The notes beneath the pieces are model-generated. The model saw nothing but the letters and a program-made list of their open reading frames with translations, did no database searches and was not told the DNA's origin. The position numbers and the translations under genes were made by a program. DNA of 64,000 nt from Paramoeba atlantica (taxonomy: Eukaryota; Protista; Discosea): NCBI GenBank assembly GCA_977017575.1, contig CDRNVI010000156.1, positions 248,001 through 312,000 of the forward strand, given 5' to 3'. Positions 1 through 53,015 of this stretch are shown here, piece after piece. How positions within the stretch are numbered: position 1 is the stretch's first letter; every line of letters starts with the position of its first letter.

Positions 1-2
1 GC

Positions 3-806: not shown

Positions 807-867
807 TTCTTTTCGTTTTTGAAAAATTTCAAATTTTTTTGTGTGGGATTGAGACCTTGCCGGGAGG

Positions 868-1701: not shown

Positions 1702-1926
1702 CTATTTTCTTTTTCTCTTCTTTTCTTTCTTCCCTCTTTCTCTTGTAAAAAAAGAAAGACACAAATAAAAATGAAAATCATGAGAATCCGATTATTCAAA
1801 CTCACGATTTATTTAAGAAACAAAAAGTTGTTTTTGTGTTTTCTTTTCGGGGAAGACCAGAAAGAAGAGAGTGGAGAGAGAAAGAGAAAGAGAAAAGAGG
1901 AAAAAAAGAGGAAAGAGAAGAGTAGA

Positions 1927-3744: not shown

Positions 3745-3829
3745 GGGAAAAATAAATTAAGAAAAAAATAGGAAATGATCAAATGTTTTGGTTCCTTTAT
3801 TCTCTTCCATTATTTGGAATATGGAATAT

Positions 3830-6800
3830 TTATTGGCAACCTATCATGCAACCCCTAGCATCTGATTGAAAGGAGAAAATCATGGTGTGGTCTTTCAGAT
3901 CCTCACAAGTTCTTGCTGGGAGACACATTCGTTCTTGTGTTTCGGTTTGAACATACACACAACAGAGTAATACAAAAGGGGTTGGGGTTGGAATTGGGGG
4001 TGTTGGGGTTGGAGTTGGAGTTGGTGTTGGAGTTGGGGTTGGAGTTGGGGTTGGTGATGGAATAGGAGTTGGAGTAGGAGTTGGTGTTGGAGCTGGTGCT
4101 GGGGTTGGGGTTGGTGTTGGAGTTGGGGTTGGGGTTGGTGATGGTGATGGTGATGGGGTTGGAGTTGGGGTTGGAGTTGGGGTTGGAGTTGGAGATGGGG
4201 TTGGCGTTGGAGATGGGGATGGGGGAGTACAAAAAGAATAACACATTGGTTCATTGACCCAGGAAGAAGATACGAAATCCCAACCTTCTCCTTCACGATG
4301 GATGTCACAAGAAGAACGATCTGTGGGCACACAATCTAAAATTGAAGGTCGAGAGATCCATGAATAAAGACAACAATTTCGAATTGGGAATGGGGTTGGT
4401 GTTGGGGGTGGAGTGGGGATTGGAGTTGGAGTTGGGGTTGGAGTTGGAGTTGGAAATGGAGTTGGTGTAGGTGTAGGAGTTGGTGTTGGTATCGGAATTG
4501 GGTTTGGTGTTGGAGTTGGGGTTGGTGTGGGAGAGGGTGAAGGGGGATAACAAAATCTGCAGTCACTATTGTGTCGCACATAATCGACTTCCCAATTAAT
4601 TAAACTGATACATTCTGTATGGAGCTCCAAACATTGTTGACGAGAGGGGTCTTTGAACGAGTGATATACACAACAATTTGTTGGAGCAGGAGAAGGGGTT
4701 GGAGTTGGAGTTGGAGTTGGAACTGATGTTGGAACTGGCGCTGGTACTGGAGTGGGGGGAGCACAAAATAAATAGCATTCATCCTCATAATGGTTCATTA
4801 ATTCATCGATGAGCTCCCACTTTGGTAGATCTGGGCACTTGTTTCCCAGAGTCAAACATTGTTTCACAGAGTGCTCACTTTTATAAGAATAAACACAGCA
4901 ATTTGATCTGCTTCGCTCCGGCGCGGGAGCGGGGATTGGGGCTGGATGAGGTGTTGGTGTAGGTACCGAAGAAGGAGTTGGTATGGGAGATGAAGGAGTA
5001 ACCAATGAATAGGTATTGAGAGTCAATTCAGATGAACGAAGCGTGCCATAATCACCAGCAGTTAAGTCACTGATTTCGATGGTCCATGTTCCTATTTCAA
5101 TTTATGAACATCACTCAATATTACAAGTTGAACAACAAAGAAAAAGAGGAGAGGAGATTGACCTGAGACAGGTTCTCGCCAATGTTTTGTTGAGGAGAAT
5201 TTCCAATTCTCAAATGATAGAGGCATTTTTTCGATTTTTTGACTCGGTTCGACACTCATCGTGTGTCCTCTTGCGGTCCATAAAAGTAACCGAAAGTCAC
5301 TTGGAGTGACAGAATAAGCGGGGATTCCTCTCAGATGTGGTTCATAGATTTCATGCTCCTCTAAAATTGAGAGTGGTTATTGAACTGCAAAGTCAGATTG
5401 AAAAGAGAACTTCCGAACCAACAACAATTGCGTCAGGACCGAGATGGTGGCCCTTTGGGTCGAGTATTTCAACAATCTCTTCGTGTTGAGTGCACATTTG
5501 ATGTTTCTCAAGCAACAATAACGCAGTCACTCCAGGAGTTTTTCTAATTTTGGAAAAAGATTAATTCAACGAATGTGTTTTGGAACAAGCGAAAGAAAAA
5601 ACCGTGGGAGAGTAAATGAGCAGGAACTTCTCTTGCAACAATTTCCCGACTTCGTTGTTGAATACAAAACCACTTCACCTCCTTCCCATGTATCTCCAGC
5701 TGGCCAAGATTTAGAGATCAAAATTTTGAATTAATTTGAATCCATCAGCTTAAAATTGAACCTTGAGTTAGAGACACAACTGGAATCGGAGTTTTTGCGC
5801 GATTTGGCAAATGGAACACCAGAGAAAACTTTTGAATATCAATTAAAATCATTTTCCAAACAGATATGAAAGAAAAGTGAAGAAAAACCTCTTCAGATTT
5901 TTGGCTTCTAGGAGAAACCAACTCACTCCGTGTACCAGAAGGTGAAATCAGCGAAATCCCCAAATCACTCGGTTGTTCATGAAGAATATTGACTTGCAAT
6001 GTGACCTATCAAATTAAAAATCATTTCAAAATGAAATCATGAGAACTGAAATATCATATCTCTTTTCAAACCCAATCAACAAAGCGATTTGTTGTTCTCT
6101 TGACAACCAGAGGAATACTAATCGTGCCAGGATCAGGAATAGATTTCGTCACTGAGGTGTTCACAACAATATCCTAAGAATAATGTGTCAAAAAAAAGAG
6201 AACATCAATTTTTTGTGGAGAGAAAAAAAGAACGAACATCTTCTGGGGTGAAAGTATAAGGGAGGCTATCCTCTGCTGCCATTCTGACAGCTTTTGTGGC
6301 ATCGATTGGACCAAATCCAAGCTGAGAAAAAAAAGAGTGAATAAGGAAGGAACACAAATATTGTCCACCTAATTATGATCTTCTTCTTCAAAGAAATAAG
6401 TATTTACTTGACTTTCAAAATAAAGACCAGCTCCATTTTTCTGAAGATTGGGATAATCTTCTGGAAAAGAAGAAGTTGCAACAAGAATATGAGCAATTTC
6501 TCGAGGAGTCAATGGCTTTGAACTCGCTTGTATCATCAATGAGACCACTCCAGCTACAAATCAAAAGATATCTTTAATTTTTGATGAAAAGAGGAGAGGA
6601 AGTGTTAAAGAGAAGCAAACCAACAATTGCAGCAGAATATTGACCACCTATTCGTTCAGAACACGATTTTCCATCACCATAAGGAGTTGGTATCCCTTGG
6701 AGTGAAGATCCTCCAGGAGCAGAGACCAACTAAAAACAAGAATTACAAAAAATAACATGGTTAAAAAAGTGATTTGAAAAGATCTTAAAAAAAACCGCAT

Positions 6801-7890
6801 TTGCACAAGGTTCTCCAAAATCACTTGGATGACCACCTAACATATGAGGTCCCACAGAGATTGAAAATGGGTGATTGGAGTACATATCATAATTACAATT
6901 ATCTCGCCTTCCTCCATTCCCTAAAAAAAAGTAAAATTGAATCATTTTTCTCTTTTGATTTGGTCATTTCTCTGTAAGAAACGTCATCTTGAGGAACCTG
7001 TAAAAGAAATGACAACGACCCCACGAGCGACAGCATTTCGCACAGATTCCCAACAAGCGTCGCAAGGAACATTACCATAACCCCCATCAGTGGCAGTGAA
7101 AGTTTGAAGAAAGATGTCAGGAGAATCCAAATTCAAAAATTTCAAATCAAGAGCATTCGCAGATCCAAGACCAACAATAGAATAAGATGCTCCATGAGCC
7201 ACTCCTCTTGTACAAGCACCGTTAAAGGCGGTTCCAACAGTAGTCCCAATGACAGATGTTGCTACTTGGGAAGGATTCTTGACAGAAACCTGGGAAAGAT
7301 ATTTTGGTTTTTCTTCCTCCATTGGAAAGAAGGAAAAGAAGAGATATCAAAACTGACCTCTGGGTTCATGTGACCAATAAGATCTCTGTGATTTGGGTTT
7401 GGGCCAACGAAACTGATTGCGATTCGAGTTCCTATGAATATGTTTGTGAATCTTTTTGCAAAAATTTTGAGATTCAGAGTGTTTCCTGAGGACAAAACTA
7501 AGATTTGAAAAGGGAAACCTTCTCCAGTAAATCCCATCTCCCAGACCCGTTCCACATTGATATGTCCTTGTTTCCGAATGATCAGAAAGAAACGAAAAAA
7601 TCAAGAAAAAGGGAATCAAGAAACAAGAAAAAGAAAAACTGACCATCAAGTTTGGCATATGGGTCAGTCGACTCCTCATAAGCAATGGTATGGAGATGCC
7701 AAGAAGAAGGAAAGAGGGGATCAAGATCATCAAACTTTGGGTGCTCCTCTTCCCATTCGGGTTCATCTCCCCACGAAATCCCTCGAGTAGGATGAACAGG
7801 AGAGTCTTGCCAAGAAAACTCAACAAAACTTGCTGAAGGGATAAGGAGGGTAACCACCAAAGAAACCCAAAGAGAGAATGAGAGTTTCAT
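3830..7890 (-). CDS. Secreted kexin/furin-like pseudoprotease 1 (S8B + P-domain with insertion + PT stalks + 4 six-Cys modules); multi-exon
   Basis: Signal peptide [19 protein letters not shown]; [11 protein letters not shown]; [17 protein letters not shown]; [16 protein letters not shown]; [25 protein letters not shown]; P-domain [21 protein letters not shown]...[14 protein letters not shown]; tail ORF 3830-5026. Confidence 0.85.
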
Positions 7891-8145
7891 TGGTGAGAAA
7901 GAAGGAGTCCCACAAAGAAAGGAGAAAGAAAAGCGACTCAAACGCAACAACAAGAAACGAAGCGAAAAAAAAAGCGAGAAAAAAGGATTTTCTTTACAGA
8001 ATCGTTGAAAGAAAAATGCACGGAAATCCTTAAGTGAAAAAAAATATTCAAAACACAGAAAACGAAAGCAAGTTTGCTTGGGCAAATGATGAGGTTTTCT
8101 CTTTTTTTTTTGATTCTATTTGGGGTCCAATCATTTCTTCAAATT

Positions 8146-11100
8146 TTATTCTTGACATCCGCTCATACAATTCTCATAACTCGCTTCAAAGGTGAGAGAC
8201 AAGACATACTCATCATCCATAACTTTACATTTTTTCTCGGGGATACACATTTTCTCTCCAGTTCCTTTTTGGAGGTAAATACAACACATTAAGGGAAATG
8301 GAGTTGGGGTTGGAGTTGGTGTTGGAGTTGGTGTTGGGGTTGGAGTTGGTATTGGAGTTGGTGTTGGTGTTGGAAATGGTGTCGGAGTTGGGGTTGGTGT
8401 TGGACTTGGAGATGGTGTTGGAGTTGGGGTAGGGGTTGGAGTTGGTGTCGGAGTTGGAGTTGGTGTTGGAGTTGGAGTGGGAGTGGGAGTTGGGATTGGA
8501 GTTGGGGTTGGAGTTGGTGTAGGTGATGGAGATGGAGATGGAGTTGGGGTTGGTGTTGGGGTTGGTGTAGGTGACGGAGATGGAGATGGAGTTGGGGTAG
8601 GGGTTGGAGATGGAGATGGTGTCGGTGTTGGCACTGGTGTTGGTGTTGGAGTGGGAACTGGAGTTGGAGTTGGAGTGGGAGTTGGGGTTGGAGTTGGGGT
8701 GGGAGTTGGAGTTGGAGTTGGTGTTGGAGTTGGTGTTGGAGTCGGTGTAGGAAAGGGTGTTGGGGTTGGTGTTGGTGTAGGGGTTGGTGATGGGGTTGGG
8801 GTGGGAGTTGGAGTTGGGGTTGGTGTTGGAGTTGGGGTTGGTGTTGGGATAGGAGTGGGAGTTGGAGTTGGTGTTGGAGTTGGAGTTGGAGTTGGGTATG
8901 GAGAGGGAGTTGGAGTTGGAGTTGGAGTTGGGGTTGGAGAGGGAGCACATTGTAAAAAGCAGTCCTCATCATATCCTTCAGTTTCAGAAATGAGATGCCA
9001 CTTTTGTAAGTTATGGCAGTCATTCTCCAGTGTCAAACATTGTTTGACTGAAGGATCATTTAAAAAGGCATATACACAACAAAAAGATCTGGTTCGAGTT
9101 GGGGTTGGAGTCGGGGTTGGGGTTGGGGTTATTGGAGTTGGAGTTGGAACTGGTGAGGGTAAGAAGTGGCTAAAAGGATAAACTGTGATTTTAAAGTTAT
9201 CTACTCTTCCTTGATCACCATAGACTTGGTCTTCAATAACAAATGCCCAATTTCCTGAAGGATTTTCATTCCAATATTTTGTTGAAGAAAATTTCCAGTT
9301 CTCAAAAGAGAGGCCTGGAATTTTGTTGACTTGCTTGCGGATTTCGATTCTCGCATTCTCCACAATTGGATCAATTGTTCTGGAAAAGATTCAACTGAAT
9401 TGGGCGACAATATATACATTACAAAAGCGAATAGAATCAAAAAAAAAACCTGAATTCACTAGAAGGGACACCATAAACTGCGACCCCAGTCCTCTCTGAT
9501 TCGTCTGCTAACGTTCGATATCCATCTAAAATGTATTTTTAAAAAGGGATGGGAAGAAAGAAAGAAAACGAGAAAAAGTCAAGAGGACCAACGAAAACAA
9601 CATCTGGGATGATTTGACTCGCTTTTTGATCAAAGATTACCCGAATTTCAACATTTGGAGAACAGATACCATGGTTTTTGAGAAGAAGGATATAAGTTGA
9701 CCCTTGTCTGAAAATGAAGACTTTTTCAGAAGAAAGAAAAAGGACAACTTTAAAAAGAGAAATAAAAAAAGAAACCCTGTGTAAGTAAAAGAACATCCGT
9801 TTCGTTTGCAGCAGGCACCATCTGAAGCGGGGGAAACAAAGGTAATATCTTCTTGTCCTTTCCATGAACGTGCCGCTAGTAGTGAGAGAATTTTTTTTAG
9901 ATTTTTACTTACACCACGAAAAAAAAATCAAAAACACCTGAATTAATTGGTTCAATTCTGAAAGAATAAGATTTCTGTTTTCCAACAACACTCGCTTCAA
10001 GCTATTGTTTTTTTTTTTAATGAAGAGGAAAAAAGAGAAAGAAAAGGTGGTTCAAACTTGATCGGTAAAAGTTTGTCTCATCTTTGCAAAGACACTCTTC
10101 ATTCCAGAAGGAGATATCAGTGAGATTTCCAAATCACCTGGGTTTGGGTGTTTTATATCTACTTCCACAGTCACCTGTGTGTGTGTGGAAAAATATGAAT
10201 AAAAAATGTTTTGTTTTTGAGAGGCACCTTTCAAAAATCAAATTCAAACCCAATCAATGGGATGGATTGAATTTAATCCTACTTCAAAAGTTACTGATCC
10301 AACTTCAGGGATGTCACGACCGACCATTGTATGGTACATAATTGGCTAAAAATAAAAGATAAATAATACAGATCCCAAGCAAAACAAAAAAGAATTTTTT
10401 GTTTTTTTGTTTTCAAACCTCTGGGTAAGATAGTCCAGGAAAAATAACAGCTTTACTCACAGCCTTTCCAGCATCAATATTTCCAAATCCAATCTGCTCA
10501 TTATATTCCAATCCAGCTCCATTTTTCTCGCTTGGAACTCCTGATGGTAAAGTAGCAGACTCAACGAGTAGGTGGGCGATATCACGAGGAGACAGGTTGT
10601 GATTGGTTGCCTCTAACATTAGGGCAACAACCCCAGCTGTGCACAAAAGAAGGAAAAAATGAGTTTAGTTTCAAAGAAGAAAAGGATGAAAAAAATATTC
10701 ACCTGTATTTGCTGCTGCATATGGACCACCAATTCGGTCTGCACAAACTTCATTTTGATAATAAGCTGCGGGAATTGGATGTCTTTGATCTCCCCCAGGA
10801 GCAGAAACAAGCTAAGATCAAAACAAAGAGAGAAAGTGAGGAAAGAGAGAGAGAACTATTTTGTCAAAGAAGACAAAGACTTACAATGGCTGCACAAGGT
10901 TCAGAATAGAAAGCAGGAACACCCCCACTTGTGTGGGACCCAACAGTTATGAGAAAGGGAGCGTTGGAAAACATGTCATAATTGCAGTTGTCTTCTTCAC
11001 CGCCATTTCCTTTTCAAAAAAAAAAGTGGGTTACAAAAAAGAAAATGGACAGAGGAATTGAAAATGAATATTCACCGGCATAGCCAATAACAGCTCGCTC

Positions 11101-11897
11101 AAGTGCAGTAATTTCCCTGATGTTCTCCCAACAACTCACGCCTGCCCATGAAAAATAAGGACCTCTTCAAACTCTTAACAATAAAAGCAAAGATATTACA
11201 TGGTGCATGAGAATTGGGGCTCTCATTTCCAGCGAAATCTTTGAGATAAAGGTCGACTGGGACTTTGCTTTGCAGAAACTTCAGTTCAGCTGCACTCTGT
11301 GGTGTTTTTAAAGTATTGAATAATAATTTTGGCATCAAAAAGGGGAAAAAGAAAAAGGTCCGTACCTCTGCTCCCAAACTCACCATTGAAAAGCGAGCTT
11401 GATAAGCAACACCACGACTACAAACACTATTAAAGGCATTTCCCACGGCCACAGCCACTACTGATGTTGTGGCGTTTTGGAGAGATTCCGAGGTAATTCG
11501 GAGAGACTAAAGAGAGTTAAAAATAAAAGAGGGTTGGTGAGGGAGGTCACTCAATTTTTGCAATCTTTTGAAAAAGAGAAACCTGAGGACTTAATCTCCC
11601 ATCAAGATCCAAGTGATTATAAAAAGGAGCATTAAAACCAAGGCCAATTGTCACTCCTTCAAAGGAAAAATAAAATTCAGTCCTAAAATTTTTTCTCTTC
11701 TTTTCTTTTTGTGGCGAACCTTTTCCTGTGAAACCAAAGGACCAGGCTCCGTCAGCATTGAGGTGACCAGTCCGAACAGTTTTCGTTGGTCGGAGATTCC
11801 AAGCACGGTGATATTCTGGATCTAACTCTTCCCCTCTATGTTTTGTTGAGCAAAAGCATCCAGACAAGAGAAAAAGGAAAAGAACAAATCCTCTCAT
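8146..11897 (-). CDS. Secreted kexin/furin-like pseudoprotease 2 (long PT stalk, 2 six-Cys modules); multi-exon
   Basis: [16 protein letters not shown] signal; [10 protein letters not shown]; [17 protein letters not shown]; [16 protein letters not shown]; [25 protein letters not shown]; [15 protein letters not shown]; [20 protein letters not shown]; tail ORF 8146-9363. Confidence 0.85.
8290..8945 (-). repeat. Coding (Pro-Thr)n hexamer tract, (CCAACH)n-like
   Basis: GGAGTT/GGTGTT/GGGGTT hexamers on the + strand, in frame with ORF 8146-9363. Confidence 0.9.
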
Positions 11898-12111
11898 CTC
11901 TTTCTCTCCACACCGTCAGGCGAGAAGCAACAAGCGACGCACGAACCAAAAAACAGAAAAACCGTGTGAGGGATAGGGTAGTGGATTTTTTGATTTTTAA
12001 ATGTTTTGATTTTCATAAAAAGGAAAAAACAAAAAAACTTCGCGCTTTTTTTCTTTTCGAGTTTTCTCTCTTTGGGTTTTTGGGCAAGATCAAAAAAAAA
12101 AGGGAGGGGGG

Positions 12112-13344
12112 ATGAGGCTTGTTGTTCTTTTCTTTTCAATCTTGGCTCTCTCTGGTTCTCATTGCTCCAAATCCGCGAGTAGTAACGATGAGAACCAAAA
12201 GTCATCTTCGTTAAACGCCACCACACAACAAGGAATTCCCAAATCGATGCCTCGAAACAGGTTTTTGTGTTGCCGCTACTCGTTCCTTAGTGATCCGTCC
12301 ATCACACAATGCTTATCTCTCGTCGGAGATTGCTTAAATCTTCAGAAGTGGCAACTTCTTTCAGCGACTCTAGAATCTGGTGATGAGTGTGATTTACTTT
12401 GTTATTCCCCAACACCATCACCTACCCCAGTTCCGAGCCCCACCCCAACTCCAACCCCATCACCAACTCCAACTCCAACTCCAACCCCAACCCCAACCCC
12501 AACACCAACTCCAATACCAACACCTACCCCAACTCCAACTCCAACTCCAACACCCACCCCAACTCCAACGCCAACGCCAACGCCAACACCAACTCCAACA
12601 CCAACACCAACGCCAACACCAATGCCAACTCCAACTCCAACACCAACACCAACACCAGAACCATCTCCATCTCCAACTCCTACACCAACACCAACACCAG
12701 CACCATCTCCATCTCCAACTCCTACACCAACTCCCACACCAACACCAACACCAACACCAACACCATCTCCTTCACCATCTCCAACTCCAACTCCAACTCC
12801 AACTCCAACACCTTTTCCCACACCCACACCCACACCAACCCCAACCCCAACCCCAACTCCTACCCCAACTCCTACTCCAACTCCAACTCCAACTTCATCT
12901 CCCTCACCAACTCCTACCCCAACACCAACTCCAACTCCAACGCCAACACCAACACCAACACCAACTCCAACACCAACTCCAACCCCAACCCCAACTCCAA
13001 CTCCAACTCCAACTCCTACTCCAACACCCACCCCAACACCAACACCAACACCAACTCCAACACCAACACCTACACCAACGCCAACACCTACACCAACACC
13101 AACTCCAACACCGACACCGACCCCGACACCAACAGTTCCAGCTCCAACACCAACACCAACACCTCCCACCCCCTCTCCAACCCCAACCCCAACCCCATTT
13201 GCATTGCAATGTTGTATCTATCTGCAAAGAGGAAGTGACGAGAAAATGTGTATCCCACAGAAGAACTGTTATCCCTTAGAAGACTATGATTTGATTCTCA
13301 CATTTGAGACCAATTATGAATATTGCCTGAGTGGATGTCAATGA
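12112..13344 (+). CDS. Secreted protein: signal peptide + six-Cys module + ~260-aa PT stalk + six-Cys module; no protease domain
   Basis: Single 410-aa ORF: [19 protein letters not shown]...[15 protein letters not shown]...(PT)n...[14 protein letters not shown]...CLSGCQ*. Confidence 0.9.
12410..13200 (+). repeat. Coding (Pro-Thr)n hexamer tract
   Basis: CCAACT/CCAACA/CCAACC/CCAACG repeats in frame with ORF 12112-13344. Confidence 0.9.
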
Positions 13345-13595
13345 GAATCAATGAACTTGTGCATTTTTTCCGACCAAAAATTGATCGGAGAAATTCCATT
13401 TTTAACAAATTAAAAGAAAAGAAAACAGAACTTGCATTTTGGAACCAAAAATCAATGAATGAATTTCAAAAAACTCTGTGCTGGTGGTTTTTTTGATGAA
13501 TTCTTTTGAGCACAAAAAAAATCAAAATCGATAATTTCGCACTTTCAAAAAGAAAACCGGTTCTTCTTTTTGGTTCGGGCCTTTGGAAGGAGAGG

Positions 13596-16500: not shown

Positions 16501-16722
16501 CCAACACCAACACCAACACCAACACCAACACCAACGCCAACACCAACAACTGTCCCACCACCCACTCGAAATAGATCTTTTTGTTGCCGATACTCATTTT
16601 TGGGTGACTCATCCATCACACAATGCTTAACTCTCCAAGATTGCTTCAATATTCAGAATTGGCAGCTCCTTTCAAAAACTGTAGAATATGATGATGAGTG
16701 CTATTTACTTTGTGATTCTTGA
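13596..16722 (+). CDS. Secreted kexin/furin-like pseudoprotease 3 (short tail, 1 six-Cys module); multi-exon
   Basis: MKGNFFFLLLVFLLGGTAQ signal; DPNYPNAWNIH; GHMNVEEAWNLGYTGEG; [16 protein letters not shown]; YSEVCSS; [25 protein letters not shown]; GDLEISLVSPSGMKS; [18 protein letters not shown]; ends CYLLCDS*. Confidence 0.85.
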
Positions 16723-16972
16723 TCTCTCACAATCCACCAACCAATTCCCCCAAAACTCCCAACACTAAAAATGTTTTCCTTTGGACTTAATTTTGACTGG
16801 AAGATCTTCTTCTCTTTCAGACAGAAGATATCCTCTTCTGGCTCAGCAAAAATAAAACGCAAAACCCCAAAAATGGATTTCAACCAAAACGGAACCCAAA
16901 ACTTCGTGCTTGCTTTTTCGTTTTTCGTTTTTCGTTTTTTCGTTCTTCCCGTTCGTGGAAGAGAGAGAGGAG

Positions 16973-19900: not shown

Positions 19901-20254
19901 CCCACACCAACACAGACACCAACACCAACGCCCACACCAATCCAAGCACCAACACCAACACCTACACCAATCCAAACACCAACACCAACACCCACACCAA
20001 TCCAAACACCAATCCAAACACCAACACCAATACCCACACCAATCCAAACTCCAGCACCCACACCCACACCTACACCAGTGCCAACACCAGTTTCCATGGG
20101 AAAAATAACTTACTGCTGTGTGTATTTGGACTTGTTAACCCGAACCAAACGATGTTTGCCACGAGATGATGAATGTCTCTCATACAAGGATATGGAGTTA
20201 GTGTTGTTCTTTCCTTCAAAAAGGGAGGAATGTCAATATGGGTGTCCAAAATAA
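16973..20254 (+). CDS. Secreted kexin/furin-like pseudoprotease 4 (type-B unit, PT stalk, 1 six-Cys module); multi-exon
   Basis: [13 protein letters not shown]...[17 protein letters not shown]; [17 protein letters not shown]; [16 protein letters not shown]; [25 protein letters not shown]; [21 protein letters not shown]; [14 protein letters not shown]; ends CQYGCPK*. Confidence 0.85.
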
Positions 20255-23200: not shown

Positions 23201-25660
23201 TCCTCCATTAAATAGAAGAAAAATAAGATGGGAGACATCGATGATTCATCTGTATCACAAACAACAACTGCATTTCTGTCAGCAGCTTTGGGAAATTCTG
23301 GAAACAATGTTTGTTCTCGTGGAACTGCTCCTTCATCTTCATTTTTAGTCATTCAAACAGGATCACAGGTTCTTTTGTTTTGTTTTTTCTCTTTTCTTAT
23401 TTGTTGCTTTTAATTTTTATCTTTGAATAATTCAGGCAGCAAATGGTCTCAATCTTTTGAGAAATTTTCATGCTCAATTAGCTGACGTTGTACTCTTGAA
23501 CATTGAAGGAACTGATCCTGAGATTAACAACACTTTTTGTTTGCTTTTTCTTTCTTTTTTCTTTTGATTTTTGTTTTGCAAGTGAATCTACATATCACTC
23601 TTATTGGTGAAAATTTTAAAAAAAATGAAACAGGTGAAACATGTTGGGAGAATGCTGAAATGTTTGTAAATCAAAACAAAGTATTGGTTTCTTCTTCAGG
23701 TTCCCCCTTTTTTTTGCTTTCAAAATCACCAAAAAAAAAGTTGGATTTTAATTTTGGAAATCTCAATTAAAAAATTACAAAAAAGGGAGTGGAGGAGAAA
23801 ATTGGAATTGTAATTATGATTTGTACTCCAATTCTCCACACATCATCACAGTTAGTTCTCATACTTTTCAAAATGCCCCTTCTTCTTCTTCTCCAATCTG
23901 TCCTTCAGTGGTAATTTTTTCATTTTCTTTTTTTGTTCTTTTCTTTTGATTCTCTCTTCTCTCTTTTATCAATTTCTCATTTTTTTTTTGAAAAAATTCT
24001 TTTTTGGGGAAAAAAAGCTTGTTTCAGGGCCAGGTGGTGATGATGAGAAAGGAATTCCTGTTGCATTTGGAGAGACAGATGACTGTTCCATTCAAAGTGG
24101 GTCTCGCCTTGCTTCAGCTCAAATTGGTTTCTCTTTTTCATTTATTTTTTTCTCTTCCTTTTAATTAAAAAAAAAATGAAAATAAACAGCTGGAGTGATT
24201 GGATTGATGATGGAAGCAAGCCCAAGAAAATTAACACACAGAGAAATTGCTCACATTTTAGTTGAGAGTTCAACAATCATTGACGCCGGGCAAACCAAGT
24301 GGAATGGAGCGGGATTTCGCCATCACCCCATTGTTCATTTTTTAATTTTTTTCTTTTTTTTTCTATCCTGATTTTGTCTTTCTTTTTAGTTGGGATTTGG
24401 AAGAGTAGATGCTGACAAAGCAGTGAAATTTGCAGCTGGTTCTCGAAGTTGGACTCATATTGTGGAGGAACTAGTTTGCTTTTCTTTTCAGTTTTTTTTG
24501 CTGTCTGTTCTGTCTCTTAAGCAATTGAATCTAGGTGATCAAAGCATCATCAAATCCAATTCAACATATTCCAAGCTTTGGAAATATTTCGGTTTCAATG
24601 TCTCCCGTGAATGTACCAAGTACAAGTCTAATTGATTATGTGACTGTGGAAACACAAATCGAACATCGAACTGCTGGAGATCTCAGATTAACTTTAATTT
24701 CACCCTCTGGAACAAAGAGTGAATTGGCTTCTCCTCATGTTATTGAACAACCAAATTCTCTGGTAAAGTTAGGTTTCATGGAATTTGAAAAAGGGAGAGC
24801 TTTTCAGTTTGGATTGAGACTTCAGAATAATGGTTCCTTTTTCTATTGTGGAAAATGAGATTAAATTATTGTCAAACTGATCTGTGATTGTAGGAGCAGA
24901 GCGTTATCCAGTGAATCAAGAACCACTTTCCCCATCTTTTTATGTTCCCCCTGAGGTTGTTCTTTTTTCTTCATTATTTTGGAACTAAACTCATATTTTT
25001 TCGGAAATAGGGAGCTTGTTGTTTGAAATCAACTTGTACTCTGAACCTCTTTTCATTCAGGTTTTATTTCCTCTTTCTTTTTTGAAAAAGGACAGCTTTT
25101 TAATTTAAAAAAAAACCAGTTCTCAAAGTGAGATTGCAATCTTGTTGTTGCCAGAAGTGGGTGATTGTACTTCAATTGTTCAAATCACAAATATTGTTGA
25201 AGGAGCAATTGTTCCTGATATAATTTTCGTTGGTAAGTTGTTCAACAATTCTTGGTTATTTCACGTCCACTTGACATCCACTCACAAATACGTTTTAATA
25301 GAAAATGTTTTGTATTCGCAACAGATGTACAATGAAGTAACCGCAACAATCCCAATCTTTCGAATCTCGTCACGCTTGTATTCATCGCTCACCCAAAAGA
25401 TATCAAATTCACCTGTGAACACATTTACATTAAAGAATAATTATGTGAAACCAGATGTAAGTTATGAAAATTGGAAGTTTTCAACAGTGAAATATTGGGG
25501 AGAAACAGTTGCAGGTTTCTCTTTCCCATTCTAATTGTTTTCTTTTGTTTTTCGACTTTTTGACTCTTTGTTAGGGGAATGGAAAATGGAAATTTCGGAT
25601 GAAGTTTGGGGTGATGGAGGGGCTGTCAATTCTCTTTCACTCTCTTATCACACATACAGT
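16990..25660 (+). repeat. Direct segmental duplication: ~17.0-19.9 kb vs ~22.9-25.7 kb (type-B unit, introns included)
   Basis: Near-identical exon and intron sequence at an offset of ~5.8 kb, e.g. 18040-18260 vs 23840-24065. Confidence 0.85.
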
Positions 25661-25837
25661 TATGCAGTTCCTCCAGCCCCAACTCCATTCTCAATCCAAT
25701 GTTGTGTCTTCATCCAACAATACACACACGAGAAAACCTGTGTCCCTCAAATGGAATGTCTTCCTCTTGACGACCATCTTCTTGTTTTATCTTTTCCTTC
25801 AAACCCTGATGGGTGTTTGAGTGGATGTCAATCATAA
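20434..25837 (+). CDS. Double pseudoprotease 5: S8/P unit A - PT linker - S8/P unit B - six-Cys module; multi-exon
   Basis: MRGNLFSLDIIFF signal; DPLYETAWNLH; [16 protein letters not shown]; the P-domain ends ITLHTF and runs in frame through PTPTPT...[16 protein letters not shown] (ORF 22567-23040) into a second complete S8/P unit; ends CLSGCQS*. Confidence 0.8.
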
Positions 25838-25959
25838 TAAATGGAAAAATTATCAGTTTACAAAAAAGATTGGTTTTTTATCCTAATTTTTGTCATTCAA
25901 CAGCTCACTCTTTTGGTGAACTACTTTTTTAATGAAAAAATTGCCATGGCCATCAGACT

Positions 25960-26895
25960 CTATTTCCTACAACCGAGAAGGCATTCATGACTTTCTGCGG
26001 GAAAGACCATCAGTAACGCGTAGCCATCGTATGGAGGACAATAATCATCTTTTCGTGGAAAACATCGTTTGGCGTTTGTTGAGAATTCTAAATAAACACA
26101 ACATCGAACAAAAGCAAAGGGAGTTGGCGTTGGTGTCGGCGTTGGTGTTGGTGTTGGTGGTGGAATTGGAGTTGGGGTTGGTGTTGGGGTTGGGGTTGGA
26201 GTTGGTGTTGGAGTTGGGATGGATGTTGGGGTTGGTGTTGGTGTTGGAGTTGGTGTTGGCGTTGGGGTTGGGATTGGAGTGGGTGTAGGAATTGGAGATG
26301 GGCTTGGAGTTGGAGTTGGTGTTGGAGTTGGCGTTGGTGATGGGCTTGGAGTTGGAGAAGGAATTGGAGTTGGCGTTGGGGATGGTGATGGTGTTGGAGT
26401 TGGTGAGGGAACTGGAGGAGTTGGTGTCGGAGATGGAGTCGGGCTTGGGCTTCTACTTGGTGTTGGTGATGGTGTTGGAGTTGGTGTCGGTGTTGGGCTT
26501 GGACTTGGACTTGGGGTTGGGGTTGGGGTTGGTGTTGGTGTTGGGCTTGGGCTTGGTGCTGGAGTTGGTGTTGGTGTTGGGCTTGGGCTTGGGCTTGGAG
26601 TTGGAGTTGGGGTTGGTGTTGGGGTCGGAGATGGCGTGGGACTTGGGGGAGTTGGAGTTGGGGTTGGACTTGGTGCTAGGCATAAGAGTTTACATTCTAG
26701 AGGAGAGAGATCTTCACTGTAAGCAAGAACCCAATCAGGTAGATCCGGACAAGCAAATTGAAACGAGACACATTCAGAAGTGGAGAGATTCTTTTGGTGA
26801 GCATAGAGGCAACAATGCGAAACAATCTCAGATCTAACAGAGAGACAAAGAATGAATCCAAGAAGAAAAAAGAAGGAGGTTTTTAGTCCTCTCAT
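25960..26895 (-). CDS. Secreted protein: signal peptide + six-Cys module + PT/PS stalk + six-Cys module
   Basis: 311-aa single ORF: [22 protein letters not shown]...CCLYAH...C...(PT)n...CCVYLEF...CLLGCRK*. Confidence 0.9.
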
Positions 26896-27115
26896 AAGAC
26901 ACCAACACCACGAACGCCCAACCCGAAAAACGCGAAAAGAATGAATTTTGTCGAAAAAAATCTCAAAAGTCGATTTTCACGCGAAACGACTTCCTGTTGT
27001 CGAGAGGTCTCTTTCTTGGTTATTCATTTTGACTTGTGGACTTTCTTTGGAAAATTATTTTTGAAAGACATTAGAAATCAAAAATCAATTCAGTTTTAAT
27101 AAAATTATATTTTTT

Positions 27116-27940
27116 TCAACCACAAGCACGGTTACATGTATCTCTATCACCTGAGAACATTGAGACTAATGTTGTTCCGGTCATACTTGGACAACCAGGT
27201 GAGACGAAGGAAAAACACTGCTTCACTCCATTTGCGTGTGTATAAACACAACAAGTATATACAAGAAAAGGAGATGGTGTTGGTAGTGGTGTTGGTGTTG
27301 GTGTTGGTGAGGGAATTGGACCTGATGAATAGCACCGTTCAATACACTCCTTTTTCGAGACAGAAAGAACGTAAAGGTAATCCCATCCTGAAAGTTCAGG
27401 GCACTGCCAATTATCCCAAACGAGGCATTGTGTTACTGCTGTATTTGCTTGAAATTGGTAATTACAACAGGGTTTCACAGCAATAGGAGTTGGTGTTGGT
27501 GATGGGAAAGGAGAAGGGGATGGAGATGGAGATGGCGTTGGTGTTGGTGTTGGAGTTGGGGATGGAGAAGGGGATGGAGTTGGTGTTGGTGTTGGCGTTG
27601 GGGTTGGAGTTGGAGTTGGGGTTGGTGTCGGGGTTGGAGTTGGTGAGGGCGTTGGGGTTGGTGTTGGACTTGGAGTTGGAGTTGGAGAGGGCGTTGGTGG
27701 GAAGCAAAGCTCCAGGCAACTTGCTGAGGAGATAGAATCTCGGTAAACCAAATGCCAAAAGGGAAGAGAGGGGCAACCCTCAAAAGTTTCGAAAACGAGG
27801 CATTGCTGAATGGTAATATCTTTTTCACTCACATAAACACAGCAATTTTGGATGCGAGTCGAATTTGAATTTGGAGTTGAAGAGACCACAGATATTGCAA
27901 ATCCCAGAAGAAGAAAGGAGAGGAGGACTTTCACCTCCAT
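27116..27940 (-). CDS. Secreted protein: signal peptide + three six-Cys modules separated by PT stalks
   Basis: 274-aa single ORF: [21 protein letters not shown]...CCVYV...CCNYQ...CCVYT...CNRACG*. Confidence 0.9.
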
Positions 27941-28115
27941 CCTTCTTCTCTCGCCTCTTCTGTTCTCTCAAAACGCCAGACAAAGCCGCACGAGAGAACA
28001 AGAAAAAGCAGAAAAAGTGTTGCTTCAAATTTAGTGCCCTTTTTTTTGGCTTTTTTATTGTTTTCTTCTTTGTCTTGTGTGTTGGCATTGTGAGGAAAGA
28101 TTATTCTTTTTCTTT

Positions 28116-31100
28116 TTACTCACAGCCACTCATACAACGATCAAAACTTGCTTCAAAAGCTATTGAGAGGGTATACCCTTCAAAATAGTGACAATAGGAT
28201 TGAGGAACGCACATTCGATGATAAGTTTCAGAATGAACATACACACAACATTTCAGGTTGTAGGGCGTTGGGGTTGGTGTTGGAGTTGGAAATGGAGTTG
28301 GAGTTGGTGAAGGAGTTGGTGTTGGTGATGGAGTTGGAATTGATGTTGGTGTTGGAGTTGGATGTGGAGTTGGAGTTGGAGTGGGGGTTGGAAAGGGAAG
28401 TGGTGAAGGTGTTGGAGTTGGAGTTGGTAGAGGGGTTGGTGCTGTGGTTGGTGTTGGCGTGGGAACTGAAGTTGGAATTGGTGTTGGAGTTGGAGTTGGG
28501 ATTGGAATTGGAACTGGAGTTGGTGTTGGAACTGGAAGTGGAGTGGGAGACGGTGCTGCGGTTGGAGTTGGTGATGGGGTTGGGGTAGGTGATGGGGGAG
28601 GATAATAATAATGGAAGGTGTGAAAGGAGACTAATAGGGATCGAAGAGTTCCTGCGTCATTGACTTCTTCATCAGAAATTACCATCGTCCATTTTCCTAT
28701 TTATTGAAAAAAATATCTCATTTCACCAAGAACTTTAAATGACATGAAAAAAGAGAATAGAAAACCTGGAACTGATTCTCCCCAATGTTTCACTGTTGTG
28801 AACTTCCAATGCTCAAAACTCACATCTGGTTTCACAAAACTATTCTTCAAAGTAAATGTATTTTCTGGAGAAATTGTGATTTTGTTGGTGAGTCTTGAAT
28901 ATGAATACGAAGACACCCGAAATATGGGGATTGTTGTTGTAACTTCGTTGTAAACATCCATCGAATCGGGACCATTTTCTACAACAAAAAAAGTAAATGT
29001 GGGCCAGATAATATCGAAAAAATTCAACACAAAAAAATTGTACCAATAAAGATCAAATTAGGTCGGCCAGCCCCTTCAATGATATTTGCGATTTGAACAA
29101 CTGAAGTACAATTGTCTATTTCAGGTAACAGTAAAATAGCAATTTCGCTGTGAGAACTATTTGTATTTTTGGTGAGAAAAAAGACTCTCCTGTCACAAGA
29201 GAAAGAAGTCATACCCGAACGAAAAAGGGTTCAGAAAACAGGAGGATTTGACACAACAAGCTCCCTATTTGAAAACCGCTTGAGTTTTTTAGCAGAGAAA
29301 CAAAAAGAATATGAGAAAAAAACAACCTCAGAAATGGGAATATAAAAAGATGAATAACGTGGTTCTTGACCAACTGCATAACCCGCAGCTCCTACAAAAT
29401 AATCAAATAAATACAACAATCCCAATCCCACTTTCTGAAGAGAAAAGGCTTACCATCATTTTGGACCTTCAATCCAAATTGATATGGGGCTCCTCCTTCA
29501 AATTCCATGAAACCTCTCTTTAATGGAGAATTTGGTTGTTCAATAACACGAGGAGAAGCCAATTCACTCTTTGTTCCAGAAGGTGAAATTAAAATTAATC
29601 TGAGATCTCCAGCAGTTCGATGTTCGATTTGTGTTTCCACAGTCACATAATCAATTAGACTTGTACTTGGTACATTCTTAATCGATATTGAAACCGAAAT
29701 ATTTCCACCATAACTTGGGATCCGTTGATTTGGATTTTTTGATTCTTTGATAATCTAGATTCAATTGCTTAGGACACTAAATAGACAGCAAAAATCAAAT
29801 ACAAAAGAAAGAAAAGTTTACAGTTCCATCCACAAGACGAGTCCAACTTCGAGAACCAGCTGCTGATTTCACTGCTTTGTCAGCGTTCACTTTTCCAAAT
29901 CCCAACTTCACAAAAATTGTTCAAAAATAGTATTTCGTAGGAAATAAGAGAATGAAAAAGAACCACAGGATGATGCAAAAATCGGGGCCCAATGGGTGTT
30001 GCGGTTTCAACCAAAATGTGAGCAATTTCTCTGTGTGTTAATTTTCTTGGGCTTGCTTCCATCATCAATCCAATCACTCCAGCTGTTTATTTTCATTTTT
30101 TTAATTAAAAGCAAAAGAAAAAAATAAATGAAAAAGAGAAACCAATTTGAGCTGAAGCAAATTGAGGTCCACCTCGCATTAAACATTCATCATACTCTCC
30201 AAATGCAACAGGAATTCCTTTCTCATCATCACCACCTGGCCCTGAAACAAGCTTTTTTTCCCCAAAAAAGAATTTTTTCAAAAAAAAAATGAGAAATTGA
30301 TAAAAGAGAGAAGAGAGAATCAAAAGAAAGAACAAAAAAAGAAAATGAAAAAATTACCACTGAAGGACAGATTGGAGAAGAAGAAGAAGGAGTATTTTGA
30401 AAAGTATGAGAACTAACTGTGATGATGTGTGGAGAATTGGAGTACAAATCATAATTACAATTCCAATTTTCTCCTCCACTCCCTTTTTTGTATTTTTTTA
30501 ATTGAGATTTCCAAAATTAAAAACCAACTTTTTTTTTGGTGATTTTGAAAGCAAAAAAAAGGGGGAACCTGAAGAAGAAACCAATACTTTGTTTTGATTT
30601 ACAAACATTTCAGCATTCTCCCAACATGTTTCACCTGTTTCATTTTTTTTAAAATTTTCACCAATAAGAGTGATATGTAGATTCACTTGCAAAACAAAAA
30701 TCAAAAGAAAAAAGAAAGAAAAAGCAAACAAAAAGTGTTGTTAATCTCAGGATCAGTTCCTTCAATGTTCAAGAGTACAACGTCTGCGTAATCTGCTCTT
30801 CTCTCTCTCAAAAGATTGAGACCATTTGCTGCCTGTTTCATCATTGAAAACTTTTCTTTTAAAAAGAGAAACAAAAAAAAATGACCTGTGGTCCTGTTTG
30901 AATGATGAAGAAGGAAGATGAAGGAGCAGTTCCACGAGAACAAACATTGTTTCCAGAATTTCCCAAAGCTGCTGACAGAATTGCAGTTGTTTTTTGCGAG
31001 ATATATGAATTATTAATGTCTTGCTTTAAAGTTTGTCGGTTTTGAAACTCCAAATGAGAAAAATGTGGGGTACGATGTCCAATTCCAATAACAATTCCTG

Positions 31101-33903
31101 TTGTTTGTGTTATTCTCTGACTCATCTATCATCATTTATTGTTTGAAAATCTACCTGATCCACTGATTCCTCTCTCCCAAACTGGTTCCACATTCAAATG
31201 TGCTTGAGAAACAAAAAAAGAAATTAGAACGGTGTCGAAAAGGATTGAGTTTGGAGATTACCTGAGGGAGCTTCTTCTGTTTCATGTAAATTCCAAGCAT
31301 TTATATACTCCAGATCGAATCCGACCTTTGGGGGTGGGATTGGGCTCGGGATTGGAGTCGGAACTGGCGTTGGAGTCGGAGTTGGAGTTGGAGTAGGAGT
31401 TGGGGATGGGCTTGGTGTTGGTGTTGGGCTGGGTATTGGGGTTGGGGTTGGGGTTGGAGGTGGAGTTGGTGTTGGTGAGGGAGATGGGAAAAACGGATGA
31501 TCGATGATTTTAAAGGTGTGAAGCGTGATTTCGAGACTCTTAAGGACTCCTTCATCTCCTGAAAACTCATCTGAAATTTTGAGAACCCATTCCCCTATTC
31601 AAAGTTAACATTTTTTGCTTGAAAGAAGATGAAAAGTTGTCAACAAACCTTTGGCTTGTTCCATCCAATTTTTCGTTGTTGAAAACCCAAAAGGTTCGAA
31701 ACTAGCTAAATTAACTTTTTCTCTGCCCCCGTTTCTTGGGGAGACAAATGTGGTTTGTGTTCCAGATGGTGATAACAAGGAAATTTTCAAATCCCCTGGT
31801 GCTGAATGGGGGAGATCCACTTTGAGGGAGACCTGTTACAAGAAAAGTAAACCAAATTGAACAGAAGGAATGTCAGCAAAGTGAAAGTTGAATCACCCAA
31901 TCAACTCGAATATCATCATCAGCGGTACAAGGGAGCTTAAAATCAATGGTCTCATAGTCATGAATTTCAACACGTGGGGTCATCTTCAATTTAAGTGGCT
32001 GAAATCAAAGAAATATAAGTTTGGAATTTGATTTCGCCAGAAAAAGAAAAATGGCCAACCACTGCAGTGTTTTTGACATAAGTGCGATGGAGAATACCAG
32101 CAGCCATTTGAACAGCTTTTCCAGCATTAATATTTCCAAATCCAATCTAACCTCTTTCTGTGAGGAAAAACTGTGGAGAAATAACAACAAACAACAAAAA
32201 CAAATATAGGAATTTAAAAAAAAATAAAAAACCCTCTCATCAAAATAATATCCTGCTCCGTTTTTACTCAGCTTGGTTTTTGAAATTAAAAAATCAGCTG
32301 TGTCAACTAAAATATGTGCAATCTCTCTTGGAGTCAACATTGGATTTGTTTCGAGCATTAATGCAATTACTCCAGCTAAGAACCAAAAATTAAATGGGAT
32401 ATGAAAAAGAGAAGATTAGAAAAAAGAACCTGCTTGAGAAGCTGCATATTGCCCACCAATTTGTTCAGTACAAGCGAGACCGCTCCCAGATGCAACATTG
32501 ATTCCAATCTTTGATCCAACAGGAACTGAAACAAGCTAACCAACAAAAATTATCAAACAATCACAATAAAAAAAAAATAAACATCTTTAATTTAACTTTC
32601 GAAACTTTGAGGCTCTTTTTTCAAAACAAAGAAAATAATAAGATTGAAAAAGAAAAGAAAAATTAAAATACCACATTGGCACATGTTTCAGTAAACAAAC
32701 TTGGTTTACCTCCAGGTTCATGAGCACCAACTGTAATTCTGAGTGGTGCATTGGAATACATGTCATAGTTGCAATTATCTTCTTCATTTCCATTTCCTTT
32801 TTTTTGTAATTTTTTTTAATACAACTTTTGTTCAATCCAGTCCCAAAAAACTCCGAAAAAAAAGAAAAAAGAACAAAACCTGCAAATCCAACAACAACTT
32901 TTTTTTGATTGAAAAGATTTTCAACTCTTTTCCAACATTTTTCACCTAAAAAGTTTCCTGGTCAAAACAAATTTCCAAAAAGAGAATGAAAAATCAACAA
33001 ACATGGAACATGAACATTTGGCCCATTCAAAGCAGTAAAATCAATCACAAAAATATCAGCATCTTTTCCATTCTCTAAAAAAGAGTAATCCAATAATGCC
33101 TATTTCACACTCAATATTCCTTTCTTGTTCAAAGAAAGGGAAGAGGAAATCTCTCTAAACAAACAAAAACCTCTTTTCCAGTTTGAGTAATAGCATATTT
33201 GGAATTATAAGCGACCCCTCTACTACAAACTCGATTGAAACCTTCCCCAACAGCAGCTGCGATGACTGAAGTTTTTAAGTCTGAAATCATATCGAGTGGA
33301 ATATCGACTGTCGACTCCTGTTTGATGAAAAGAAATGAATTCGAGAGAAAAATCCTCTTATTTCATCATTTCTTTTTTCTCAGACAAATTTTCTGATCTC
33401 ATCCTCTTCTTTTTTCAAAAGATCAAGAATGAAATCAAACCAAATTCATACGTTCTGAGAGATCATAATGACCAGGAGGGCTTTGATACCCAAACCCAAT
33501 GATCAAGCCTGAAACAAAAACAATGAGAAGAGTTAAAAGGAAAAGAAGAAAGGAAATGGACCGAATCCTGTGGCGCCAAGAGACCAAGCAGTCTCAATGT
33601 TCATGTGACCTTTAAAAAAATATTCAACAGACTCAAAGACAAAAAGAAAAACGAAACGAAGAAAAGAGAGGAGATTGTTTGTTTGGAAACAACAACGAAG
33701 AAAGAAAGAAAAAGAAAATTCCAAAGACCATGAGGGTACTTTTCAGTTTCATGGAGATTCCAAGCAGAATCGTACAAGGGGTCCACATGCCCAAAACCTA
33801 ACCCCCGATTGTTCTCTGTTTTCCCTCCATCAACATCGAAATTGATCTTTCCTTCAATTTGGAGGAGAAAAACACCAAGAAAGATCAGAGAAAGGGATAG
33901 CAT
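28116..33903 (-). CDS. Double pseudoprotease 8: S8/P unit A - PT linker - S8/P unit B - PT stalk - six-Cys module; multi-exon
   Basis: [18 protein letters not shown] signal; [11 protein letters not shown]; [15 protein letters not shown]; in-frame linker [21 protein letters not shown]...[15 protein letters not shown]; the second unit resembles gene 4; ends RCMSGCE*. Confidence 0.8.
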
Positions 33904-52945: not shown

Positions 52946-53015
52946 ATAAAACAACTAAGTTAAGAAAATGTTCAATTGATGATGGTTTTAACTCTTCCCA
53001 AAAATGAATGATCAA

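Follow-up and report, generated by a model that had tools for sequence, protein, structure and literature searches.

A gene cluster for predicted secreted, triad-less kexin-like pseudoproteases with Pro/Thr stalks in Paramoeba atlantica

The closest described relatives of the proteins considered here are the furin/kexin-type convertases (MEROPS S8B; furin 1p8j and 4omc, Kex2 1ot5), in which a catalytic domain is followed by a P domain and which were the best relatives in both sequence and fold. The proteins are encoded by a cluster at positions 3830–33903 of a 64,000-nucleotide (nt) stretch of Paramoeba atlantica DNA, the whole of which was analysed and is called the window below; all coordinates are positions in it. 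Six genes of the cluster carry eight furin/kexin-type S8+P units, numbered here by gene (u1–u4 in g1–g4, u5A and u5B in g5, u8A and u8B in g8). Kept from furin and kexin are the DPxY..W start, an NNGVC-like segment, GNGG, the CN.D.Y.N segment and the helix that follows the nucleophile. Unlike furin and kexin, the units have no catalytic Asp, His or Ser, no prodomain and no autocleavage site, do not keep, by alignment, the acidic P2 and P4 positions, carry a C-x2-C-W motif and, in six of the eight, hold what is most likely a PA domain inside the P domain. Some of the genes hold two units, and the C-terminus is a Pro/Thr stalk with a novel Cys module rather than the Cys-rich, transmembrane or amphipathic tail of furin/kexin proteins. 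By homology, as judged from sequence, the proteins are a branch of the S8B convertases that, having neither triad nor prodomain, would be classed as non-peptidase homologues, that is, as pseudoproteases.

Loss of catalytic residues from a subtilase fold is known from CspC and CspA of Clostridioides difficile, which are functional by binding and signalling rather than by cleavage (PMC7200643, PMC12880746). Those proteins differ from the present ones in being bacterial, of the S8A type, located inside the spore and still provided with a prodomain, and in having no P domain, stalk, Cys modules or tandem expansion. A further comparator is PCSK9, a secreted protein of the convertase family that binds non-catalytically via the surface of its catalytic domain and a C-terminal Cys-rich domain. 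It was a weak PDB match to the family profile and is unlike the cluster proteins in its intact triad, single autocatalytic cleavage, retained prodomain, proteinase K-like branch, lack of a kexin P domain and single-copy vertebrate gene. The probable insertion of a PA fold into a protease-family scaffold would be shared with plant SBT3-type subtilases and C5a peptidase, and the PA domains of VSR1, ZNRF3 and PaAP were matched by Foldseek. The PA domain of known subtilases is inserted into the catalytic domain; here the insertion would be in the P domain. The overall layout of a head, a Pro/Thr linker and a small disulfide-bonded terminal module resembles that of fungal cellulases with a CBM1 carbohydrate-binding module (CBM) and of Acanthamoeba cyst-wall lectins, but here the head is a dead protease and the module has no similarity to a known CBM or lectin.

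Literature searches returned Clostridioides CspA/CspC, of the S8A type, and general pseudoenzyme reviews, with no kexin-type pseudoprotease family found, in agreement with the claim of a first-pass annotation of the window that no triad-less kexin family had been described. For Paramoeba, the literature gave only an unresolved S8/S53 protein in the P. perurans exoproteome. The pseudoprotease concept is thus established, and what is new is the subfamily, its architecture, the prodomain loss, the likely nested PA domain, the Cys module and the scale of expansion. It is considered very probable that the proteins are non-catalytic, maintained and secreted. The best explanation overall, to which we give an even chance, is that of a lineage-restricted family of secreted pseudoproteases serving as head-stalk-anchor elements of an extracellular coat and not as enzymes.

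The loss of the triad was assessed by building a hidden Markov model (HMM) from the S8 parts of the units and aligning to it the 150 best database relatives. Canonical relatives in this alignment carried the D of DDG, the H of HGT, the N and the S of GTS in the same columns. A MAFFT alignment with NCBI-named PCSK6 proteins, a furin-like protein and a canonical protist kexin gave the same columns, which bears out the earlier claim that the units align co-linearly to furin. Likewise, a profile of seven close relatives searched against the PDB matched furin 1p8j (E=1.4e-46) and Kex2 (E=3.8e-35) co-linearly over the whole catalytic domain; in the 1p8j alignment the F of the family stands opposite chain residue D46 (+107 = Asp153) and the Q opposite Ser368. 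The substitutions listed for all eight units in the first-pass annotation were each reproduced, and are as follows (furin numbering; the last residue is that in the oxyanion Asn295 column).

5006–7722, minus strand: u1; Asp153 to F (7409–7411), His194 to V (7263–7265), Ser368 to Q (6640–6642); Asn295 column N (6916–6918)
9169–11822, minus strand: u2; Asp153 to F (11634–11636), His194 to A (11471–11473), Ser368 to P (10722–10724); Asn295 column N (11005–11007)
13689–16464, plus strand: u3; Asp153 to L (13943–13945), His194 to L (14105–14107), Ser368 to T (14836–14838); Asn295 column N (14563–14565)
17048–19879, plus strand: u4; Asp153 to H (17349–17351), His194 to T (17489–17491), Ser368 to Q (18300–18302); Asn295 column S (17987–17989)
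20539–22725, plus strand: u5A, without PA insert; Asp153 to F (20808–20810), His194 to Q (20962–20964), Ser368 to Q (21798–21800); Asn295 column N (21463–21465)
22873–25660, plus strand: u5B; Asp153 to H (23114–23116), His194 to T (23261–23263), Ser368 to R (24105–24107); Asn295 column S (23788–23790)
31509–33783, minus strand: u8A, without PA insert; Asp153 to Y (33486–33488), His194 to L (33276–33278), Ser368 to Q (32449–32451); Asn295 column N (32792–32794)
28611–31316, minus strand: u8B; Asp153 to H (31075–31077), His194 to K (30991–30993), Ser368 to Q (30162–30164); Asn295 column S (30478–30480)

The eight units are mutually 32–81% identical. The motifs [ILV]DDG[ILV], HGT..AG and GTS..P were absent from all six frames across 3.8–34 kb, and an alternative exon restoring the triad is therefore excluded; this also disposes of the possibility, named beforehand as one that would overturn the reading, that correct splicing restores DDG, HGT and GTS. 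Nor is another conserved catalytic set present, as the residues at these positions vary from one paralogue to the next. The fold-defining motifs previously described as conserved were found to be kept in general, with the corrections that AW..G.TG.G reads VW in four units and that u2 carries NCNYDMFSN.

Two local features of the S8 domains were also noted. In u4, u5B and u8B, a His-rich stretch (GHHSPH.SH or GHRTPH.SH) occupies the position of the furin catalytic Asp and the next loop (17349–17375, 23114–23140 and 31051–31077), and could be a metal site. In all eight units, a C-x2-C-W motif replaces the canonical WGP..DG..VDGP region (e.g. 14360–14450 in g3). It is also present in the database relatives P0013, P0014, P0016, P0019 and P0021, is not found in P0017 or P0024, and may mark a new disulfide or metal site.

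The window corresponds to contig ctg3968l (102 kb) of the ENA assembly ERZ24900291, whose gene calls come from a prokaryotic caller and thus record only exon fragments. The window is eukaryotic, of about 38% G+C and rich in short GT-AG introns. Gene models were obtained with a custom protein-to-DNA dynamic-programming aligner with phase-aware GT-AG introns; g3 was spliced by hand first, and g3 and later closer paralogues served as references for the remaining genes. This gave six complete genes from Met to stop, with no internal stops and all 104 introns of the GT-AG type and 50–136 nt long, so the earlier description of open segments and conserved splice sites holds. Every model starts with an ATG followed by a hydrophobic signal-like segment. 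The cluster runs from the first base of the g1 stop codon (3830, minus strand) to the A of the g8 ATG (33903, minus strand). All 14 junctions of g1 align without gaps, within six residues on each side, to the transcript P0014, and the same applies to all g3 junctions covered by the transcript P0009; since these mRNA-derived paralogues match the junctions, the computational models are supported. The nine genes are as follows.

3830–7890, minus strand: g1, 15 exons, 1030 aa, 54.6% identical to P0014 over the full length; signal-like N-terminus, u1, P domain with PA-like insert, then four Pro/Thr tracts alternating with three internal and one terminal Cys modules
8146–11897, minus strand: g2, 15 exons, 937 aa; u2, P domain with PA-like insert, short Pro/Thr tract, internal Cys module, Pro/Thr tract of about 210 aa, terminal Cys module
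12112–13344, plus strand: g2b, single exon, 410 aa; signal-like N-terminus, internal-type Cys module, Pro/Thr tract of about 260 aa, terminal Cys module; no protease-like domain and no Pfam family
13596–16722, plus strand: g3, 17 exons, 691 aa, introns of 59–76 nt, exon 9 aligning to solved furin; u3, P domain with PA-like insert, short Pro/Thr tract, one C-terminal Cys module
16973–20254, plus strand: g4, 16 exons, 736 aa; u4, P domain with PA-like insert, Pro/Thr tract, terminal Cys module
20434–25837, plus strand: g5, 28 exons, 1165 aa, two units in one reading frame; u5A with plain P domain, Pro/Thr linker, u5B, P domain with PA-like insert, terminal Cys module
25960–26895, minus strand: g6, single exon, 311 aa; signal-like N-terminus, internal-type Cys module, Pro/Thr tract, terminal Cys module; no Pfam family
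27116–27940, minus strand: g7, single exon, 274 aa; signal-like N-terminus, three Cys modules split by Pro/Thr tracts; no Pfam family
28116–33903, minus strand: g8, 27 exons, 1277 aa, inverted paralogue of g5; u8A with plain P domain, Pro/Thr linker, u8B, P domain with PA-like insert, Pro/Thr tract, terminal Cys module

In both g5 and g8, the two S8+P units are fused within one exon, where the Pro/Thr linker runs into the DPxY..AWNLH start of the second unit; in g5 this exon (22640–22927) covers the last part of unit A, the linker and the first part of unit B. With u5A and u8A 73% identical and u5B and u8B 77% identical, g5 and g8 represent a two-unit gene duplicated in inverted orientation. 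The three single-exon genes within the cluster, g2b, g6 and g7, consist only of a signal peptide, six-Cys modules and Pro/Thr tracts, and have the same terminal module as the pseudo-kexin genes.

The S8 domains of the window are divided into short exon pieces that gave no S8 match in Pfam, and database relatives therefore served as proxies. Two of these, P0014 and P0016, pass the gathering score of Pfam PF00082, at 37.9 and 42.5 bits respectively. A 97-aa fused exon, searched by itself, gave no PDB match. The P domain was recognized directly in the window exon 5748–6005 (PF01483, E=6.7e-9), and in the relatives PF01483 matches in two stretches split by an insert. The catalytic domain, as marked by its conserved DPxY..W start, was found to begin after just 25–56 residues, a count that includes the signal peptide, so that no prodomain is present; likewise PF16470 (S8_pro-domain) had no Pfam match in P0014, P0016 or P0021 and was present in the canonical P0035 and in PCSK6 proteins.

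From alignment gaps, an insert of about 150 aa lies between the two halves of the P domain in u1, u2, u3, u4, u5B and u8B, and is missing from u5A and u8A; the example in g3 is given below.

15567–16250, plus strand: PA-like insert of g3

The fold models used here are those of a database paralogue and of the Cys module. For the equivalent region of P0014 (residues 358–626), an AlphaFold model with a predicted local distance difference test score (pLDDT) of 79 retrieved the furin/Kex2 P domain first in Foldseek, followed by the PA domains of ZNRF3, VSR1 and PaAP (E=1e-4 to 1e-3, probability 1.0). In P0015, Pfam PA (PF02225) scored 22.7 bits at the same place as the insert, against a cut-off of 23.9. 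The insert is most likely a PA domain nested in the P domain, as judged from the modelled fold.

Selection was measured as the ratio of nonsynonymous to synonymous divergence (dN/dS) by the pairwise Nei–Gojobori method (NG86), with 200 bootstrap replicates per pair. Deep pairs are saturated at synonymous sites (dS >1.1), so that the young pairs alone carry weight; in the unsaturated pairs dN/dS was 0.31–0.51, with the following values.

u5A–u8A: dN/dS 0.31, dS 0.57
u4–u8B: dN/dS 0.41, dS 0.34
u5B–u8B: dN/dS 0.45, dS 0.33
u4–u5B: dN/dS 0.50, dS 0.22
u2–u3: dN/dS 0.32, dS 1.1

The 95% upper bounds were at most 0.66 and the highest single replicate was 0.87, so that every replicate fell below 1. 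The comparison, which had been proposed earlier as a gauge of function, thus points to purifying selection among the paralogues. Intron divergence (Jukes–Cantor) was 0.09–0.26 in the S8 part and 0.45–0.67 in the P part; it tracks dS and is two to three times dN. The mid-S8 introns of g4, g5B and g8B (17844–18321, 23634–24126 and 30143–30634) are 93–100% identical, several S8-part introns reaching 97–100%, and their P-part introns about 46–80% identical, with one at 93%.

Relatives were sought among 1.84 billion representatives with a profile made from the longest conserved exon (alignment A1), and 4189 proteins matched at E<=1e-3. A maximum-likelihood tree built on 86 near-complete S8 domains joined the eight units of the window and P0014, P0016, P0017, P0019, P0021 and P0024 in one clade, all of it triad-less, with a support of 100 in the Shimodaira–Hasegawa-like approximate likelihood ratio test (SH-aLRT). 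A wider all-dead group of 22 domains (support 94) adds five domains of P0001, two of P0015 and P0042, and the nearest canonical neighbours in the tree are furin-like. The family has environmental relatives from other samples. A word-indexed search of annotated proteomes with P0014 returned only canonical convertases at 27–30% identity, from which the family seems, by its sequence distribution, to be confined to a poorly sampled lineage.

Two of the relatives, P0014 and P0009, are P. atlantica MMETSP0151 transcripts, and are paralogues 55–57% identical to g1, g2 and g3. Treatment of P0014 as a cross-species orthologue of g1 was considered and rejected, as a VWA-domain protein of the window is 100% identical to a peptide of the same transcriptome. 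P0016 is a full-length open reading frame (ORF) on a 2.5-kb mRNA-like JGI contig. The combination of pseudo-kexin heads with Pro/Thr stalk and Cys modules recurs in P0014, P0016, P0018 and at the locus L004 (ERZ24900291 ctg3904l, 1–10966), where five Cys modules and at least three further genes of the family lie. At a further locus, L002 (ERZ24900291 ctg3944l, 2400–16400), an uninterrupted ORF of 3332 codons and adjoining ORFs carry at least seven triad-less S8-P units of another type, with Asp replaced by Gly and Ser by Glu or Asp and with no Cys modules; L002 adjoins LANC-like, AMP-binding and ketoacyl-synthase genes. P0014 and P0009 are not encoded at L004 or L002, which implies still more copies elsewhere in the genome. 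The family is thus large in one amoeba, with eight units here, at least three genes at L004, at least seven units at L002 and two further transcribed paralogues. The first-pass annotation had not noted this extension outside the window, nor the missing prodomain, the PA-like insert or the three genes that have stalk and module but no protease-like domain.

Outside the S8+P units, the signal-like N-termini, Pro/Thr stalks and C-terminal Cys modules, and the lack of a transmembrane segment or hydrophobic C-tail, all hold as first described, on hydropathy and sequence inspection. A 19-residue Kyte–Doolittle scan for a transmembrane or glycosylphosphatidylinositol (GPI) tail gave peaks only at the N-terminal signal and at one borderline strand in the PA insert, and the last 19 residues score 0.6 or less. 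Pro/Thr stalks occur in nine of nine genes, with Pro, Thr and Ser making up a fraction of 0.22–0.70 of whole proteins and tracts reaching about 260 aa. The longest stalk of g2 is encoded by near-perfect short repeats.

8299–8940, minus strand: longest Pro/Thr stalk of g2, about 210 residues of (P-T/S)n

At the DNA level, the tracts at 3830–5091, 8146–9379, 12112–13344 and 25960–28700 are near-perfect short repeats with strong local GC skew. This DNA is open in several frames on both strands and is hard to assemble from short reads, and the tract lengths likely vary between individuals.

The six-Cys module is present in 17 copies in the cluster, with five Cys invariant and one nearly invariant in the pattern CC-x-Y-x(10-12)-C-x(5-8)-C-x(16-21)-C-x3-C. 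Internal and terminal subtypes can be told apart, and the terminal subtype ends eight of nine genes. An AlphaFold model of the g8 copy (pLDDT 91.7) has a beta-beta-beta-alpha fold of three strands and a C-terminal helix. The module gave no Pfam match and no PDB neighbour with E<1 in Foldseek; MbtH-like beta-beta-beta-alpha look-alikes (E>1) were generic and were rejected as homologues. The copies are as follows.

28119–28262, minus strand: terminal-type Cys module of g8, the modelled copy
3833–3976: Cys module
4223–4387: Cys module
4544–4687: Cys module
4757–4912: Cys module
8149–8298: Cys module
8941–9093: Cys module
12256–12408: Cys module
13198–13341: Cys module
16570–16719: Cys module
20102–20251: Cys module
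25688–25834: Cys module
25963–26115: Cys module
26674–26826: Cys module
27119–27265: Cys module
27326–27481: Cys module
27698–27856: Cys module

A model of how such proteins would work can be outlined. Each would be synthesized without a prodomain and be directed to the secretory pathway by its N-terminal signal peptide. The globular head would be formed by the triad-less S8 domain packed on the P domain, with a nested PA domain in most units, and would be carried on an extended, probably O-glycosylated Pro/Thr stalk acting as a rod. The stalk would terminate in the small disulfide-rich beta-beta-beta-alpha module. Because g2b, g6 and g7 share the stalk and terminal module but have a Cys-module head, the terminal module is taken to serve all of these proteins for anchoring or assembly, and the heads to be binding surfaces that can be exchanged. 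On this reading they would be structural and adhesive components of an extracellular coat (glycocalyx). The specific coat or adhesion role is tentative and is given somewhat less than an even chance. A doubtful extension is that the family, together with the genes for stalk and module only, forms the protein scaffold of the Paramoeba coat, with the heads held tens of nanometres off the membrane on glycosylated Pro/Thr rods and tethered via the Cys module. They would serve to attach the amoeba to its prey or, in relatives that infect fish, such as P. perurans, to the epithelium of the host.

Several points weigh against the coat model and its components. Secretion and O-glycosylation are predictions from sequence alone, and anchoring via the terminal module is likewise putative. 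The placement at the cell surface rather than in the medium, a wall or a vacuole lumen is conjectural, as are ligands of the head, of the PA domain and of the Cys module. The PA assignment depends on a paralogue model with a pLDDT of 79, and Pfam PA had no match in P0014 or P0021, which belong to the clade of the window units. Exact look-ups for g2b, g6 and g7 and a region-restricted protein search for g2 transcripts came back blank; with a length filter and fragmentary transcripts, such a blank is not evidence of absence. The near-identical S8 introns indicate recent gene conversion among g4, g5B and g8B, to which part of the similarity of u4, u5B and u8B is due. The constraint, finally, is real but moderate (dN/dS 0.3–0.5), as is common for extracellular proteins.

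The alternative that fares best, and is still unlikely, places the proteins in the wall or matrix of a resting stage or in another extracellular structure, where the six-Cys modules would act as carbohydrate-binding modules that fix them to polysaccharide. The recurrence of head, Pro/Thr linker and small Cys-rich terminal module in nine of nine genes would suit this role, as would the compact disulfide-rich fold predicted with high confidence for the module, and comparable layouts are found in fungal cellulases and Acanthamoeba cyst-wall lectins. However, the module has no detectable similarity to a Pfam family or solved structure, known carbohydrate-binding modules included, the two transcribed paralogues stem from an ordinary culture transcriptome, and true cysts are not known from Paramoeba species.

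Soluble secreted binders or regulators, comparable to PCSK9 or CspC/CspA, would be a quite unlikely alternative, in which the dead head keeps a remnant of the cleft and sequesters peptides, inhibitors or partner proteases from prey, host or the amoeba itself. In furin, Asp306 and Tyr308 belong to the S1 subsite, and Asp154, the Asp191 loop and Glu236 to the acidic P2/P4 subsites. In the alignment, every unit and relative has the equivalents of Asp306/Tyr308 (the NCNYD.YSN motif), and five of the eight units retain the oxyanion Asn, but the equivalents of Asp154, the Asp191 loop and Glu236 are not conserved and the loop preceding His194 is shortened. The first-pass suggestion of decoys binding RxKR peptides is weakened accordingly. 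Binding of some ligand would accord with PA domains elsewhere, which bind peptides as the matches to VSR1 and ZNRF3 suggest, and diffusion with the lack of a membrane anchor. Against this, long mucin-like stalks and a shared terminal module suit a tethered protein better than a diffusible one, and residues without chemical kinship (Q, P, T and R) stand at the position of the nucleophile.

It was also asked whether the genes are decaying pseudogenes left by a burst of convertase duplications, which is strongly disfavoured and of very low probability. The loss of all catalytic residues, the only moderate dN/dS and the lack of direct transcripts of these copies would allow it, but the ORFs of 691–1277 codons run across 104 GT-AG introns with no frame break, all dN/dS bootstraps lie below 1 and the losses are common to a deep clade with transcribed members. 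The earlier inference of maintained non-catalytic proteins rather than pseudogenes is therefore supported by the reading frames, dN/dS, intron divergence, the triad-less clade and the transcribed paralogues. Active proteases hidden by missed splice forms or a relocated catalytic set, to which Thr at the nucleophile position of u3, the His-rich stretch at Asp153 in u4, u5B and u8B and the computational nature of the models might point, are likewise strongly disfavoured and highly improbable, as no frame of the cluster contains an exon of the DDG/HGT/GTS type, the triad positions are internal to exons and have conserved flanks, the junctions agree with mRNA-derived paralogues, the replacements vary between paralogues and there is no prodomain.

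If the family does form the coat scaffold and serve in adhesion, a protease fold would have been recruited wholesale as a surface adhesin, together with a new anchoring domain. Subtilases normally need their prodomain for folding, and the family is a natural test of subtilase folding without this chaperone. It also provides a new small disulfide domain for characterization. Little is known of the surface coat and the adhesion machinery of Paramoeba, the genus to which the agent of amoebic gill disease belongs, and the family supplies concrete candidates for their components.

The remainder of the window holds ordinary neighbours and one repeat array. A single-exon gene for the VWA-domain protein lies at 34217–35539 (plus strand); its product is identical over 441 of 441 residues to the P. 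atlantica EukProt/MMETSP0151 peptide P0196, and the next named match is from Paramoeba aestuarina, at 51%. On this identity the window belongs to P. atlantica (Amoebozoa, Dactylopodida) or to a strain that is not distinguishable from it. The other neighbours are listed below.

853–1698, plus strand: Sel1-repeat protein gene
39549–40943, plus strand: PAS-domain protein gene
53019–53699: UCH-type deubiquitinase fragment
61294–62085: leucine-rich repeat (LRR) protein
49500–53000: array of at least four tandem copies of a repeat of about 787 bp, 65–94% identical

The copies of the array have similar short ORFs on both strands, and it looks like a small tandemly repeated gene.

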